The notes beneath the pieces were generated by a model. The model saw only the letters and a program-made list of their open reading frames with translations. It did no database searches and was not told the DNA's origin. Shown here piece after piece: positions 3,268-12,179 of a stretch of DNA of 64,000 bases (the first letter of the stretch is position 1; every line of letters begins with the position of its first letter). The position numbers and the translations under genes were made by a program. Source of the stretch: Calcarisporiella thermophila CBS 279.70 (lineage: Eukaryota > Fungi > Calcarisporiellomycota); the NCBI RefSeq assembly GCF_041956535.1, contig NW_027192217.1, positions 240,196 to 304,195 of the forward strand. The letters are read 5' to 3'.

Positions 3268-3663
3268 CTGTTTCAAATAAATCGAAATGCTATAGGAATA
3301 TCCCAGCTATCCATCGGAATAGCTGTCGGTGGCAAAAATTCAACGCGTGCAAAGCACGGATCTAGTTAATTCTGGCCACAAAGGTGGGTTGAAAACCCAT
3401 TTTCTGATTAGTGCCTTGAACCATGCAGAGAGGATGATAATAATAGATCGCTCAAAATAGATGCTCTTCCCATATTCCAAATTAATTTGATCCTGACTGC
3501 ACACATAAAGGCTTTAGGCTTGATATTTGTTATTTCGTGACTCCCTCGAGGGACCATGATTTGGAGTCCGCCATGAAACAAAAAGCCCAGATCCATGGAA
3601 GATGGTAACCCATGGATCAGCTAATAAAGGATATCACCACGATAGCACCGTTCTTTCTCGATT

Positions 3664-3670
3664 ATATAAA
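3664..3670 (+). promoter_or_regulatory. Putative TATA box of the secreted repeat-peptide gene
   Basis: ATATAAA about 100 nt upstream of the ATG at 3771, followed by a pyrimidine-rich leader. Confidence 0.45.
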
Positions 3671-3770
3671 GGCCCAAACGCAACGGCTCCCCGAAGATTG
3701 CACATACTCCACTTTGCATTTTCATTAATATCACATTTGCATATTTCAATTATTCCCTTCAATACCCACC

Positions 3771-4227
3771 ATGGTAAAGCTAGCTATTATTTCCACCCTA
3801 CTTGTGCTTGCCGCGTCTGTCTCCGCTCTCCCAACCAACCAACTCGAGGAGCGCACACTTGGCCTTATTGCGGCAGGTGCCCCTGCGGCGACGCAATGTT
3901 GCGCTAGGACTACTGCCAAGGAAAAACGCACTCTCGGTCTGCTTGGTGTTGGAGGCTGCTGTGAATTCCCCGGATTTAAGGCCAAACGCACTCTTGGCCT
4001 CCTCCTCCACAAGTGTGTTCGTTGCGCTGGTGTGTGCAGGCCTTGCGACAACAACGCCTCAACAAACAATAACGCTAACACGAATGTGAACACAAACACA
4101 AACGTCAACAACGTAAGATTGAAGATACCCTGTCCCACCATTTAGATTAATTAACTTGGATTTTTTATTTTAGAATAATAACAATAATAACAACTCGAAC
4201 AACAACAATGACGATGACGACGAATAG
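3771..4227 (+). CDS. Secreted Kex2-processed-type repeat precursor (3 x TLGL Cys-rich units, Asn-rich tail), about 131 aa
   Basis: Signal peptide [19 protein letters not shown]; units after EER, EKR and AKR each begin TLGL; intron 4113-4173 (GTAAGA...TTTAG) leads into exon 2 NNNNNNNSNNNNDDDDE*. Confidence 0.82.
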
Positions 4228-9328: not shown

Positions 9329-9947
9329 CTTGCTCTATTTTCTAAAAGCAGGTCATATTAGGGGGCTCAATGGGTGAATTTTGTGGATTATTGTGGCTTG
9401 TGCAGTACTTCGCGCTGGTAGCAGAATAGTTAACAGTATTTAGTAAGTTCGCATATCAAGGGAGGTGTTGCTATTCAGTAAAAGTAATCCACTTCGTATC
9501 TATTTTCTTTATTAATGCTCGATTTGATGTTACTAAATTCATGAAATAAAGAGCCAGCTTGTCACATAAAGTTATTGACGAAGGATAAAAATATCAAAGC
9601 TACCATTGATCGAAGCTCCGATTGCTAATTTATTAATTTTTATTGCCGTAGACAGTATCGTCCTTCACCCAACCAATTTTTAAGGGTTGCACGACCCGTG
9701 CTTAAGCAATAACAAGCAAATGGGTAGCGGAATTATTCGTCTCGCCCTTCTGATTTCGACTCATTCGCTTATCGTCCTGCTCTTCTCTTTTATTTTCTAC
9801 TCTTTATTTTTCTCTTCATCCTCAACTTTGTCACCTGCTGATACATATTCCATTCCTTTTATACTCTACTTTCATTATTCATTAACTCTATCTTGCACAG
9901 TTGCATATAATCTCCTCTCTCAGTTTTAGAGTGTGAGCCAAAAGAGA

Positions 9948-12179
9948 ATGTATGTAATACACCATTCTCTTTACTTCCTTTTGGTGGTAACTTGGTTTCT
10001 ACTGAGCGCTATTTGGATCGAGGCTGCTCCTTTTCAATTCGATCTCCCAGCTCGACAAGTGCTTGGCCCTTCTCGCTATAGCTCATTTGACTTCACCAAT
10101 GGCCCTCCAGAGAATAGGCGCCAAATGGGGGGTATAGATAGTAAGAATCAACGAAGCTCGATCCAGCAAGATGAGTCTACTATATCCTCTGGTGAAACAA
10201 ACAATAAGCCTTCTCCCAACAAGAGCTCAAGTGGACGCAATAAGGCATTAAAGGATCAAGATCAGAAAAGTAGGCTAGGAGCAACGAATAAGAGCAATCA
10301 AAATAAGCACGATTTTAGAGCTAGCCCCAAAAATTCCCTACAAAACGGAAGTACGACGCCTGTAAACAGGAACTCGGGAAAGCATGAAGGAATATCTGGG
10401 GGAAATAGTCAAAGAGAGACAAAGCTACCTGAGCAAGTATCACTAGAGAAGTCAGAGAATGCAGCTCCAAGGGGAAAAACTGGTCAAAATAAGTCCCAGA
10501 GAGAATCGATCCAAGGATCCAAGAATACAACAGAACAACAGAAGAAAGGAAAGGCCCAAGAACACAGATCTACAGGCGATTCTAAGAATGCTCAACTTAA
10601 AGACGCGGCGAAAGGAGCAAATAGCTCCACTAAGCAGTCGGAGGGATCAAAAAGTGTTGCAGTAAAAAAGGAAGGCGCCAAAGTATCTGTCAAGAGACCC
10701 GAGAAAGGCACTCAGAACGAAACTTCAGGCAAGCATTCGTCTGAAATATCCAAGCCTAGGGAGTCGTCAAAGAAAGAATCAAAATCTGTGAAGGCAGTTG
10801 GAAATTCCACGGAAAAAAAAGCTGGAAAAGTGGAAATAACCAAGTCGAGGGAACCCAAAGAGATGACCTCAAAGGGATCCGTGTCAAAGGAGTCGAAAAA
10901 GGAGTCAGGAGAAAGTGAAGAGAAAAGTAAGTCTAATAATAAGATGGAAGAGAAGCACTCAAAAGTATCATCGGAGAATGCGGAGTCTCAGTCCAAGAAA
11001 CCTACGGTTGTGTCGACAAAATTACCTGTCAATAAGGGATCAGAGGTGACGAAGGAATCGACTAAAACTAGGCAGCTCCCAGTTTCGACTCCCAAGGAAT
11101 CAAGGGAAGGAACTACGTCTAAAAATTCTCACGAGAAGATGAAGGAATCGTCGCCAGTTAACAAGGAGTCGATCTTGGATTCTATAGTAAACACCAAACA
11201 AGATACAAGGAATTCGCGAGAATCTTCAAAGGGGTCGGAGAAAAACGTAGATATGTCGCCCGAGCCTATAAAGAAAGCTGATGCAAAAGAAATAACTGAT
11301 AAGCAGCACATGGACGAATCCACAAGGTTACCGGAGAAACCGACAGCAATGGAGCATACCAAGAAAAAATCTTCAAAGGAGCCTTCGAAAAAGGATTTAT
11401 TGAAGAGTCCGATGGGTAAAACAGAGGAGATGAAAGATAGTTCCAGCAAAGAAATGTCGACAAAGAGCCATGAGAACGAGGGAGTTGATTCCGTGAATGA
11501 GACATCAAAGAGTCGCCCCAGCGAACCTGTGCGCGAAGATTCTGCTCGAGGCTCTCCAATTAAGAATTCTGAAGCTGAGCCTGTGGATAGAGATACAATG
11601 GGCGCAGGAATGCCGAAAACGTCCAGCCAAATCGATGCCCCCAAACCTTCACCTTCACCTGAGCGGACCCAACAGTCTACCCCTTCTTCTTCGTCTGAAC
11701 AGACTCCACAGATTAAGCCGTCACCGTCACCTAAACAGACCCCACAGGTTAAGCCATCTCAATCAACTGAGCAGACTCAACAAGATAGAACTTCTCCATC
11801 AGCTGCACAGAATCAGCAAAGTAAATCTGAGAATAGCAATACTCGCGTTCAAGATAAGTCCAGCACTTCCTCGCTTGTAAAGGCTGCAGAAATCCAAGAT
11901 CCCGACGCAGAACCGGCCCCGAAGAAACCAGTTGTTGGACCATTCGCTACTTTTCCAATTGGTATGATTATCACTGGCTTTGTGCTATTTGTAGGCACCA
12001 CTATAGTGCTTTTGGCCAGCTATGAGCGCTCCAGGTGCAGAAAAGTGTTCCGACGTCAACGGGATGTACTGCTCGCAGCCTCTAAATATAACGCAAACCC
12101 GTTTGAACAAAACCGGCGCCCAGCACGACAAACTATTATCATGCAGGCTACTCCAACGAAACTAAGAATGACAGAGTGA
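9948..12179 (+). CDS. Intronless type-I membrane protein: signal peptide, long S/K/E/Q-rich low-complexity ectodomain, one C-terminal TM helix
   Basis: Single ORF over 2.2 kb; hydrophobic N-terminus YFLLVVTWFLLSAIWIEA; TM segment FPIGMIITGFVLFVGTTIVLLASY followed by basic RSRCRK. Confidence 0.8.
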   Translation: MYVIHHSLYFLLVVTWFLLSAIWIEAAPFQFDLPARQVLGPSRYSSFDFTNGPPENRRQMGGIDSKNQRSSIQQDESTISSGETNNKPSPNKSSSGRNKALKDQDQKSRLGATNKSNQNKHDFRASPKNSLQNGSTTPVNRNSGKHEGISGGNSQRETKLPEQVSLEKSENAAPRGKTGQNKSQRESIQGSKNTTEQQKKGKAQEHRSTGDSKNAQLKDAAKGANSSTKQSEGSKSVAVKKEGAKVSVKRPEKGTQNETSGKHSSEISKPRESSKKESKSVKAVGNSTEKKAGKVEITKSREPKEMTSKGSVSKESKKESGESEEKSKSNNKMEEKHSKVSSENAESQSKKPTVVSTKLPVNKGSEVTKESTKTRQLPVSTPKESREGTTSKNSHEKMKESSPVNKESILDSIVNTKQDTRNSRESSKGSEKNVDMSPEPIKKADAKEITDKQHMDESTRLPEKPTAMEHTKKKSSKEPSKKDLLKSPMGKTEEMKDSSSKEMSTKSHENEGVDSVNETSKSRPSEPVREDSARGSPIKNSEAEPVDRDTMGAGMPKTSSQIDAPKPSPSPERTQQSTPSSSSEQTPQIKPSPSPKQTPQVKPSQSTEQTQQDRTSPSAAQNQQSKSENSNTRVQDKSSTSSLVKAAEIQDPDAEPAPKKPVVGPFATFPIGMIITGFVLFVGTTIVLLASYERSRCRKVFRRQRDVLLAASKYNANPFEQNRRPARQTIIMQATPTKLRMTE
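11641..11800 (+). repeat. Degenerate coding tandem repeats (KPSPSP-x-QT units) near the membrane
   Basis: KPSPSPERTQQ, TPSSSSEQTPQI, KPSPSPKQTPQV, KPSQSTEQTQQ: about 12-aa period. Confidence 0.6.

Follow-up and report, generated by a model that had tools for sequence, protein, structure and literature searches.

A TLGL-arm family of predicted secreted proteins in the fungus Calcarisporiella thermophila and its possible maturation into a disulfide-stapled hydrophobic head

Disulfides form in the ER, ahead of convertase cleavage in the late Golgi, and in insulin-type prohormones and the alpha and beta chains of the yeast K1 killer toxin, oxidative folding is followed by dibasic cleavage, with the chains staying disulfide-linked. 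Convertases also expose hydrophobic N-termini, as in class I viral fusion peptides and in candidalysin from Ece1. Among fungal Kex2 substrates, KEPs have been mined by a pipeline that requires in-silico cleavage at every KR/RR to yield four or more fragments, each at least two residues long (Le Marquer 2019, PMC6339444), and pro-domain-processed effectors (K2PP) carry an extended Kex2 motif, LxxR, which tolerates Glu and Pro among the P2 residues (Outram 2021, PMC8528282). The protein described here, encoded in a 64-kb stretch of DNA that was analysed as a whole (hereafter the window), contains two [KR]R sites, at residues 52 and 72, and would be cut there into three fragments and not the four of the KEP pipeline; adding its LEER site would give four, but LEER is not dibasic. 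It does show a repeated motif of the KEP kind, with TLGL(L/I) opening three units and ...G-CC present in two of them, and low similarity beyond. The K2PP layout is also present, as LPTNQLEER|T, with a KR/RR/LxxR site in the first half of the protein after a short segment. Judged by these motifs, the window protein sits between two known classes of Kex2 substrate, the KEPs and K2PP.

The window DNA is of a eukaryotic, fungal type with a G+C content near 40%, and comes from a 28.2-Mb assembly of 116 contigs from Calcarisporiella thermophila, which has been placed as an early-diverging Mucoromycotina saprobe (PMC10079182). The gene lies at 3771-4112 and 4174-4227 on the forward strand and encodes 131 aa once a 61-nt intron is removed. 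An ORF end at 4227 needs a 61-nt GT..AG intron, which is found in phase 0 at 4113-4173 (+; gtaaga...ttttag, with a branch-point-like attaac motif), and this model is supported because the intron of a paralog on contig 12 (62 nt, gtgagt...attag, gattaac) lies at the identical position and in the identical phase. A TATA-like box, gattatataaaggc, read directly at 3660-3675 (+), about 100 nt 5' of the ATG, is a putative promoter element, and a comparable gatataaaa box stands 5' of the ATG of the contig 12 paralog; the start context is caccATGg. In outline, the protein consists of a signal peptide, a pro-segment, three TLGL units and an Asn-rich tail running to a DDDDE end. Read from 3771, the ORF gives a 19-residue signal peptide, LPTNQLEER, TLGLIAAGAPAATQCCARTTAKEKR, TLGLLGVGGCCEFPGFKAKR and TLGLLLHKCVRCAGVCRPCDNNASTNNNANTNVNTNTNVNN, so that the division made in a first-pass annotation of the same DNA, into a signal peptide, this pro-segment and the units TLGLIAAGAPAATQCCARTTAKE-KR, TLGLLGVGGCCEFPGFKA-KR and TLGLLLHKCVRCAGVCRPC, was correct throughout on re-reading. 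Elsewhere in the window (9933-12179, +) an intronless 748-aa ORF encodes a protein that starts with a hydrophobic segment, continues through a long disordered region rich in K/S/E and has a single transmembrane-like segment at its C-terminal end; it has no Pfam match.

The signal peptide (3771-3827, +) has K at position 3, a hydrophobic core of 12-13 residues and V-S-A at -3 to -1, and a cut after VSA is probable. By inspection, the N-terminus has the canonical n/h/c layout, which is kept across the family, as is the pattern M-K...L.L.A(S/T)..A.P in every member. The pro-segment LPTNQLEER (3828-3854, +) ends L-x-x-R, placing Leu at P4 and Arg at P1. Arm 1, TLGLIAAGAPAATQ-CC-ARTTAKE-KR (3855-3929, +), is made of 14 uncharged Gly/Ala/Leu-rich residues, a CC pair that is invariant in 5/5 members, a linker and KR. 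Arm 2, TLGLLGVGG-CC-EFPGFKA-KR (3930-3989, +), is an extra unit present only in both three-arm members, and its CCEF.GFK.KR segment is near-identical in the contig 12 paralog. Arm 3 and its base, TLGLLLHK-CVRC-AGV-CRPC (3990-4046, +), contain a first CxxC that is family-invariant and a second that occurs only in members with a second CC arm; reading the window sequence confirmed the earlier statement that two units carry CC and the third CxxCxxxCxxC. Exon 1 is closed by an Asn-rich N-x-N-x-N stretch, DNNASTNNNANTNVNTNTNVNN (4047-4112, +), and NVN-type stretches follow the head in 4/5 members. For exon 2 (NNNNNNNSNNNNDDDDE plus stop, 4174-4227, +), the contig 12 locus matched best, at the DNA level, in the late Asn-to-Asp segment of the paralog's tail, at 82% across 50 nt of low-complexity sequence (E 3e-7).

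Homology searches were run with the two exons as separate queries. The contig 12 paralog was found by six-frame genome search at 62% identity and has the head EER|TLGLL...CC...SKR|TLGLL...CCEFRGFKTKR|TLGLL...KKCVPCRNNCVPC followed by an Asn-rich stretch, the intron and a 520-residue tail, about 645 aa altogether. This tail (exon 2, L003:8078-9637) has 39 Lys and zero Arg in its 520 residues and thus offers no P1 residue; across the four long tails, one dibasic site was observed against 4.2 expected, a depletion that is not significant. Its blocks run in the order poly-Asn, E/T-rich, about 20 PEKPEK repeats, an (NGQ)n run, G/N/T-rich and poly-D/E, and it terminates in ...DDDCGCEDED.

A profile built from the window gene and the contig 12 paralog found three two-arm members, a tandem pair on contig 13 (365 and 262 aa) and one on contig 6 (311 aa). 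Their shared plan is a signal peptide, a pro-segment to L-x-x-R, a T(L/I)GL arm, CC, (K/R)R and a TLGL arm with C-V-x-C, usually followed by an N-V-N-type stretch and E/K/Q- or E/S-rich bodies ending ..SGY. A second genome pass with the five-member profile gave no additional Cys-bearing member, and a Pro-rich protein at C6:1020341 (L009) was rejected as a family member. We defined the TLGL-arm family by a signal peptide, a short pro-segment ending in Arg, a T(L/I)GL arm, CC, (K/R)R and a second TLGL arm ending C-V-x-C, followed by a low-complexity body, and the window gene shows each of these elements. Sixteen residues are invariant in the five members, including L25, R28, T29, C43, C44, R53, T54, C82, V83 and C85; the window gene has 16/16 of them, and the five-member profile, which includes its own sequence, gives it 67 bits (E 4.5e-17). 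In 4/5 members, of 262 to about 645 aa, the TLGL/Cys head makes up only the first 70-110 residues, and the earlier reading as a repeat precursor that releases peptides is not supported for the family as a whole.

Beyond the Cys-bearing members, screening of all 53 genomic DNA matches to (K/E/Q)R-T-L-G-L, together with a marginal match on contig 7, led to predicted secreted proteins that are free of cysteine. The 53 matches compare with 61 for the reversed control, so the motif is not expanded in the genome beyond these genes. In this branch, one arm follows a 4-8-residue pro-segment, as in MKVTAFLVSAALALVATTEAAPTHEKR|TLGLLALLLAKK..., and is succeeded by polyproline, Gly/Pro or PT-rich low complexity. 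A front-end profile identified at least 6 such genes, 3 of them within 4 kb on contig 7, and in these at least 6 Pro-rich proteins a single (E/Q)KR|T(L/I/F)GL arm is the predicted mature N-terminus. The two branches align by hhalign with 93.5% probability (E 2e-7, 33 columns), a score to which signal-peptide similarity adds. The contig 7 cluster (C7:399775-403840) comprises three polyproline genes with TLGL/TIGL arms on the same strand, and several of its genes share the ending ...R(R)T(I/V)TVYTTL. At C3:882372 onward there is a TFGL-arm member whose arm, TFGLIGALIREKVRFIERIFGK, is strongly amphipathic, cationic and helix-like (helical moment 0.52), with (PSTSPTGTG)n repeats behind it and then a stretch without readable sequence. 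Two further candidates, C5:43168 (EKR|VWLL) and C26:270115 (NKR|AIGIGG), share the layout of signal peptide and KR without a TLGL arm and are regarded as doubtful.

The junction DNA CGCAC(A/T)CT(T/C)GG(C/T)CT stands at each unit start, at 3852, 3927 and 3987, as had been noted before. A degenerate R-T-L-G-L DNA pattern has 3 matches in the 64-kb window, where 0.75 would be expected, all in frame and within 150 nt. This recurrence had been taken to point to internal duplication, but a recent duplication is not indicated, as the three R-T-L-G-L junctions differ from one another by synonymous codons only (9 pairwise differences, 0 non-synonymous). Over the 12 junctions of the Cys family, 176 synonymous differences were counted versus 53 non-synonymous ones, the latter tracing to an Ile in place of Leu in one arm and to the degenerate second copy on contig 13. 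Because the junction differences in the window gene are synonymous, selection on the peptide maintains the R-T-L-G-L motif. Between the window gene and the contig 12 paralog, exon 1 has a saturated pS of 0.80 and a pN of 0.28, indicating that the duplication is old, that both copies are constrained and that the cores are not hypervariable, contrary to the first-pass annotation; the cores are 61% identical, as exemplified by CCEF(P/R)GFK(A/T)KR. The window gene is thus very probably real and under constraint.

Arg occupies P1 at 18/18 junctions, 12 in the Cys family and 6 in the Cys-free branch. The internal junctions of the Cys family (n=7) are KR in 6 cases and RR in 1, and those of the Cys-free branch are KR in 6/6. 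The first junctions of the Cys family read LEER, LEER, LAPR, LVSR and LSER, with P4 Leu (L25) and P1 Arg (R28) invariant and P2/P3 varying, a pattern that fits the published specificity of Kex2 (PMC8528282). Where the first junction has Glu or Ser at P2, it is a suboptimal Kex2 site, which counts against cleavage there. Five intact proprotein-convertase P domains are encoded in the genome, and stops interrupt a sixth. The earlier claim that the protein is secreted and that a Kex2-type site stands directly in front of every TLGL unit is supported. Judged by its motifs, Kex2-type cleavage of the window protein is likely. P-domain matches lie at C5:1110032-1112179, C7:757755-759762, C17:258385-258645 and C19:558104-558436; those on contigs 5 and 7 form pairs about 1.6 kb apart, divergent or convergent, and the contig 19 copy has two in-frame stops. 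Yeasts typically have a single Kex2, and the convertase genes of this genome are many more. Multiple convertase genes fit a secretome rich in Kex2 substrates.

The cysteines follow a simple arithmetic: in 5/5 Cys-family members there is one CC pair fewer than there are arms, and likewise one CxxC motif fewer. Two-arm members have one CC and one CVxC, three-arm members have two CC and CxxCxxxCxxC, and one-arm relatives have no cysteine within or close to the arm. Measured from Thr to the first Cys, the arms of a given protein are similar in length (14/9/8, 17/13/12, 14/12, 14/12 and 12/13). The outer arms are uncharged, hydrophobic, 40-50% Gly+Ala and scarcely amphipathic, with a mean Eisenberg H of 0.48-0.68; the degenerate second contig 13 copy and the contig 6 member, whose first arm is cationic, are exceptions to these values. 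The arm closest to the body is cationic in most members. AlphaFold2, run on the mature head with a five-sequence alignment, gave a pLDDT of 42, no secondary structure and no confident fold. From these counts, made in five related sequences that amount to two or three independent lineages, we infer that the cut arms would stay disulfide-tethered, the CC of each extra arm pairing with a CxxC at the foot of the last arm. Since disulfides are made before convertases act, cutting would then free N-termini and not arms. The free release of the units that had been claimed at first thus becomes doubtful.

Given the conserved sites, arms and cysteines, we tentatively favor the reading that the window gene is the shortest member of a secreted family with a convertase-matured, disulfide-stapled hydrophobic head, acting as a surface or matrix protein. 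According to this scheme, the signal peptide would be taken off and the cysteines oxidized in the ER, and a Kex2-type convertase would then cut, late in the secretory pathway, after L-E-E-R and both K-R sites. Cleavage would leave three arms of 8-14 residues that are hydrophobic, uncharged and rich in Gly/Ala/Leu, each with a free N-terminal Thr-Leu-Gly-Leu. The CC pairs of the two outer arms would keep them bonded to the two CxxC motifs at the base of the third arm, which would lead on to the acidic, Asn-rich tail. The mature protein would have a three-pronged, disulfide-stapled hydrophobic head with a short polar tail. Its role might be that of an extracellular surface or matrix protein, as suggested for the longer relatives, in which the head sits on charged or Pro-rich bodies of 200-550 residues, and the arms exposed by cleavage could insert into a hydrophobic interface or membrane, or self-associate. 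The long members are most likely wall, surface or matrix components, and the window gene would encode a minimal version with a head and a short tail. It counts against this reading that the window protein's tail, unlike theirs, is so short that the protein could serve mainly as a peptide source.

A bolder and rather unlikely extension is that the TLGL head represents a new extracellular device for attachment or assembly, in which two to three parallel arms stapled by CC-to-CxxC bonds form a multi-pronged claw. Such a claw might fix long proteins of polar or Pro-rich composition, or in the window gene no more than a short Asn/Asp tail, to membranes, to hydrophobic surfaces or to each other. It would then be, by analogy, a cellular equivalent of the viral fusion peptides that cleavage activates, and a modular tag in which arm number co-evolves with the cysteines.

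Searches beyond the genome suggest that the family is confined to this lineage. Pfam detected no domain in the window protein, even at E 10, or in five relatives, and a profile search of the PDB returned nothing above noise (E about 0.4). Word-index searches with exon 1, with the head of the 365-aa contig 13 member and with the head of a Cys-free member gave no real relative, and none was found in scans of JGI metagenomes and prokaryote genomes. An HMM search of 1.84 billion representatives, a library without this genome's own family members, gave two matches, both artefacts of translated tandem repeats (satellite DNA). These two were long near-identical repeats whose score was summed over 5-7 weak stretches; short Cys/Gly-rich profiles can yield such false positives. 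With the three-arm profile, the score of a two-arm relative would reach only about 34 bits, under the reporting threshold of that library, and distant relatives could therefore escape. Look-alikes in the ESM Atlas reached 0.77 and 0.75, so that neither is more than a weak lead; the second is an ascomycete pheromone-precursor cluster. No TLGL-type core was found in the supplementary tables searched from Le Marquer 2019 and Umemura 2020. The TLGL family therefore appears to be undescribed, as the first-pass annotation had supposed and in agreement with every collection searched, and, as far as could be searched, restricted to this lineage.

The main competitor of the stapled head is a classic Kex2-processed precursor, an improbable alternative, which would release three free peptides of about 23, 18 and 58 residues after Kex1-type trimming; these would be signalling, antimicrobial, membrane-active or metal-binding peptides, with CC reduced, modified or bonded between copies. 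The dibasic sites stand precisely at the unit boundaries and are conserved, the head of the window protein has almost no body behind it, the convertases of the genome are expanded, the weak Atlas look-alike at 0.75 is a pheromone-precursor cluster, and hydrophobic peptides released after KR do exist, candidalysin from Ece1 being an example. Two KR sites and three non-identical units, however, fall under the published KEP threshold, and the TLGL arm or head forms the N-terminus of a long protein in 10/11 relatives, where it is no repeated core. The number of cysteines also covaries with the number of arms as tethering predicts, and free peptides with an unpaired vicinal CC are unusual in the oxidising secretory pathway. 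Free, hypervariable bioactive peptides from the window gene are thus the less likely outcome.

The protein might instead never be cleaved at all, the K/R-R-T-L-G-L repeat being structural and the whole a small cysteine-rich secreted protein with a compact four-disulfide domain. Eight cysteines in about 50 residues could form a knotted mini-domain, and it is the whole R-T-L-G-L that is conserved, not merely the basic pair. This view can hardly account for the first junction, which keeps exactly P4 Leu and P1 Arg while P2/P3 vary, or for the Cys-free branch, in which the motif stands 4-8 residues past the signal peptide and can only be a pro-peptide boundary. Chargeless Gly/Ala/Leu arms are, in addition, unlikely in a globular domain of 70 residues, and AlphaFold finds no fold, a weak argument with five sequences. 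Overall, we regard an uncleaved protein as doubtful.

It is very improbable that the gene is a non-functional remnant, a truncated, decaying and unexpressed copy of the long contig 12 paralog, for although it is by far the shortest member and its exon 2 resembles the far C-terminal N/D tail of that paralog, as though the body had been deleted, neither its reading frame nor its splice sites or TATA box is damaged, it retains every family-invariant residue, its pN lies far under a saturated pS, as expected under long purifying selection, and its junction differences are all synonymous.

Finally, the flanking genes encode an acetolactate-synthase-like protein (TPP_enzyme_M), an anthranilate synthase (Chorismate_bind) and a mitochondrial-Hsp70-like protein (HSP70), and the genes within about 10 kb are this TPP enzyme, the chorismate-binding enzyme, the Hsp70 and orphans, in line with the first-pass annotation, which had seen no adjacent tailoring enzyme. 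A RiPP precursor, in which the TLGL/Cys units would be cores tailored by enzymes encoded elsewhere, can be set aside as scarcely credible: a signal peptide with KR-flanked units is likewise found in dikaritin precursors (PMC7329392), and CC and CxxC could be modification sites, but the units are far from being identical repeats, the relatives look like long structural proteins, and a RiPP cluster is unlikely given the housekeeping neighbors and the zero genome matches to UstYa/DUF3328 (PF11807), the oxidase that marks dikaritin-type loci near the precursor, in a weak search whose control was also silent.

If the stapled, convertase-matured head is real, an early-diverging fungus would use convertase cleavage to unmask hydrophobic N-terminal arms on its surface or matrix proteins. 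Cleavage would then have a role beyond peptide release or pro-domain removal, which would represent a new design principle for fungal secretomes and offer an entry point to the construction or coating of surfaces in such fungi. A further consequence would be that motif-based mining for KEPs may mistake disulfide-tethered multi-chain proteins for sources of free peptides.

Compared with KEPs (Le Marquer 2019, PMC6339444; Umemura 2020, PMC7329392), the window protein is alike in its predicted signal peptide, its KR-bounded units and its repeated unit-start motif, and also in its restriction to one lineage and in having no adjacent tailoring genes, as for most KEPs. It differs from them in that its units are not near-identical, most of its relatives are long single-head proteins and its cysteines look built to hold the units together. 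With K2PP (Outram 2021, PMC8528282) it shares a short disordered pro-segment ending LxxR or KR (LxxR in 5/5 first junctions), whereas K2PP have one pro-domain and a folded effector, and the TLGL family adds 1-2 internal sites, arms and low complexity. K2PP systems are effectors of plant pathogens, whereas Calcarisporiella thermophila is a saprobe.

Ustilago Rep1, itself Kex2-processed, and the class I hydrophobins resemble the window protein as candidate surface-active secreted fungal proteins, but there is no sequence similarity to either. Its cysteines are spaced CC-CC-C-C-C-C (CC-CC-CxxCxxxCxxC) against C-CC-C-C-CC-C in hydrophobins, and it matches neither PF01185 nor PF06766. The genome has three matches to class I Hydrophobin (PF01185) above the curated cut-off, C25:89122-89352(+), C18:374809-375051(-) and C18:373349-373579(-), at 80, 30 and 25 bits; hydrophobins outside Dikarya would be noteworthy if the species is an early-diverging member of Mucoromycotina. 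The idea that the TLGL family replaces missing hydrophobins was rejected, as the genome has these three matches.

The proposed order of events is that of insulin-type prohormones and of the K1 toxin, with no relationship in sequence or fold, and tethering in the TLGL family is deduced from cysteine counts. A parallel for the arms themselves may lie in class I viral fusion peptides and candidalysin, which they resemble in being uncharged, Gly/Ala/Leu-rich segments right after an Arg site that would be freed by cleavage. The TLGL arms are shorter (8-17 residues) and come without a trimeric coiled-coil or a toxin context, so that the resemblance would be an analogy of design and not of homology.
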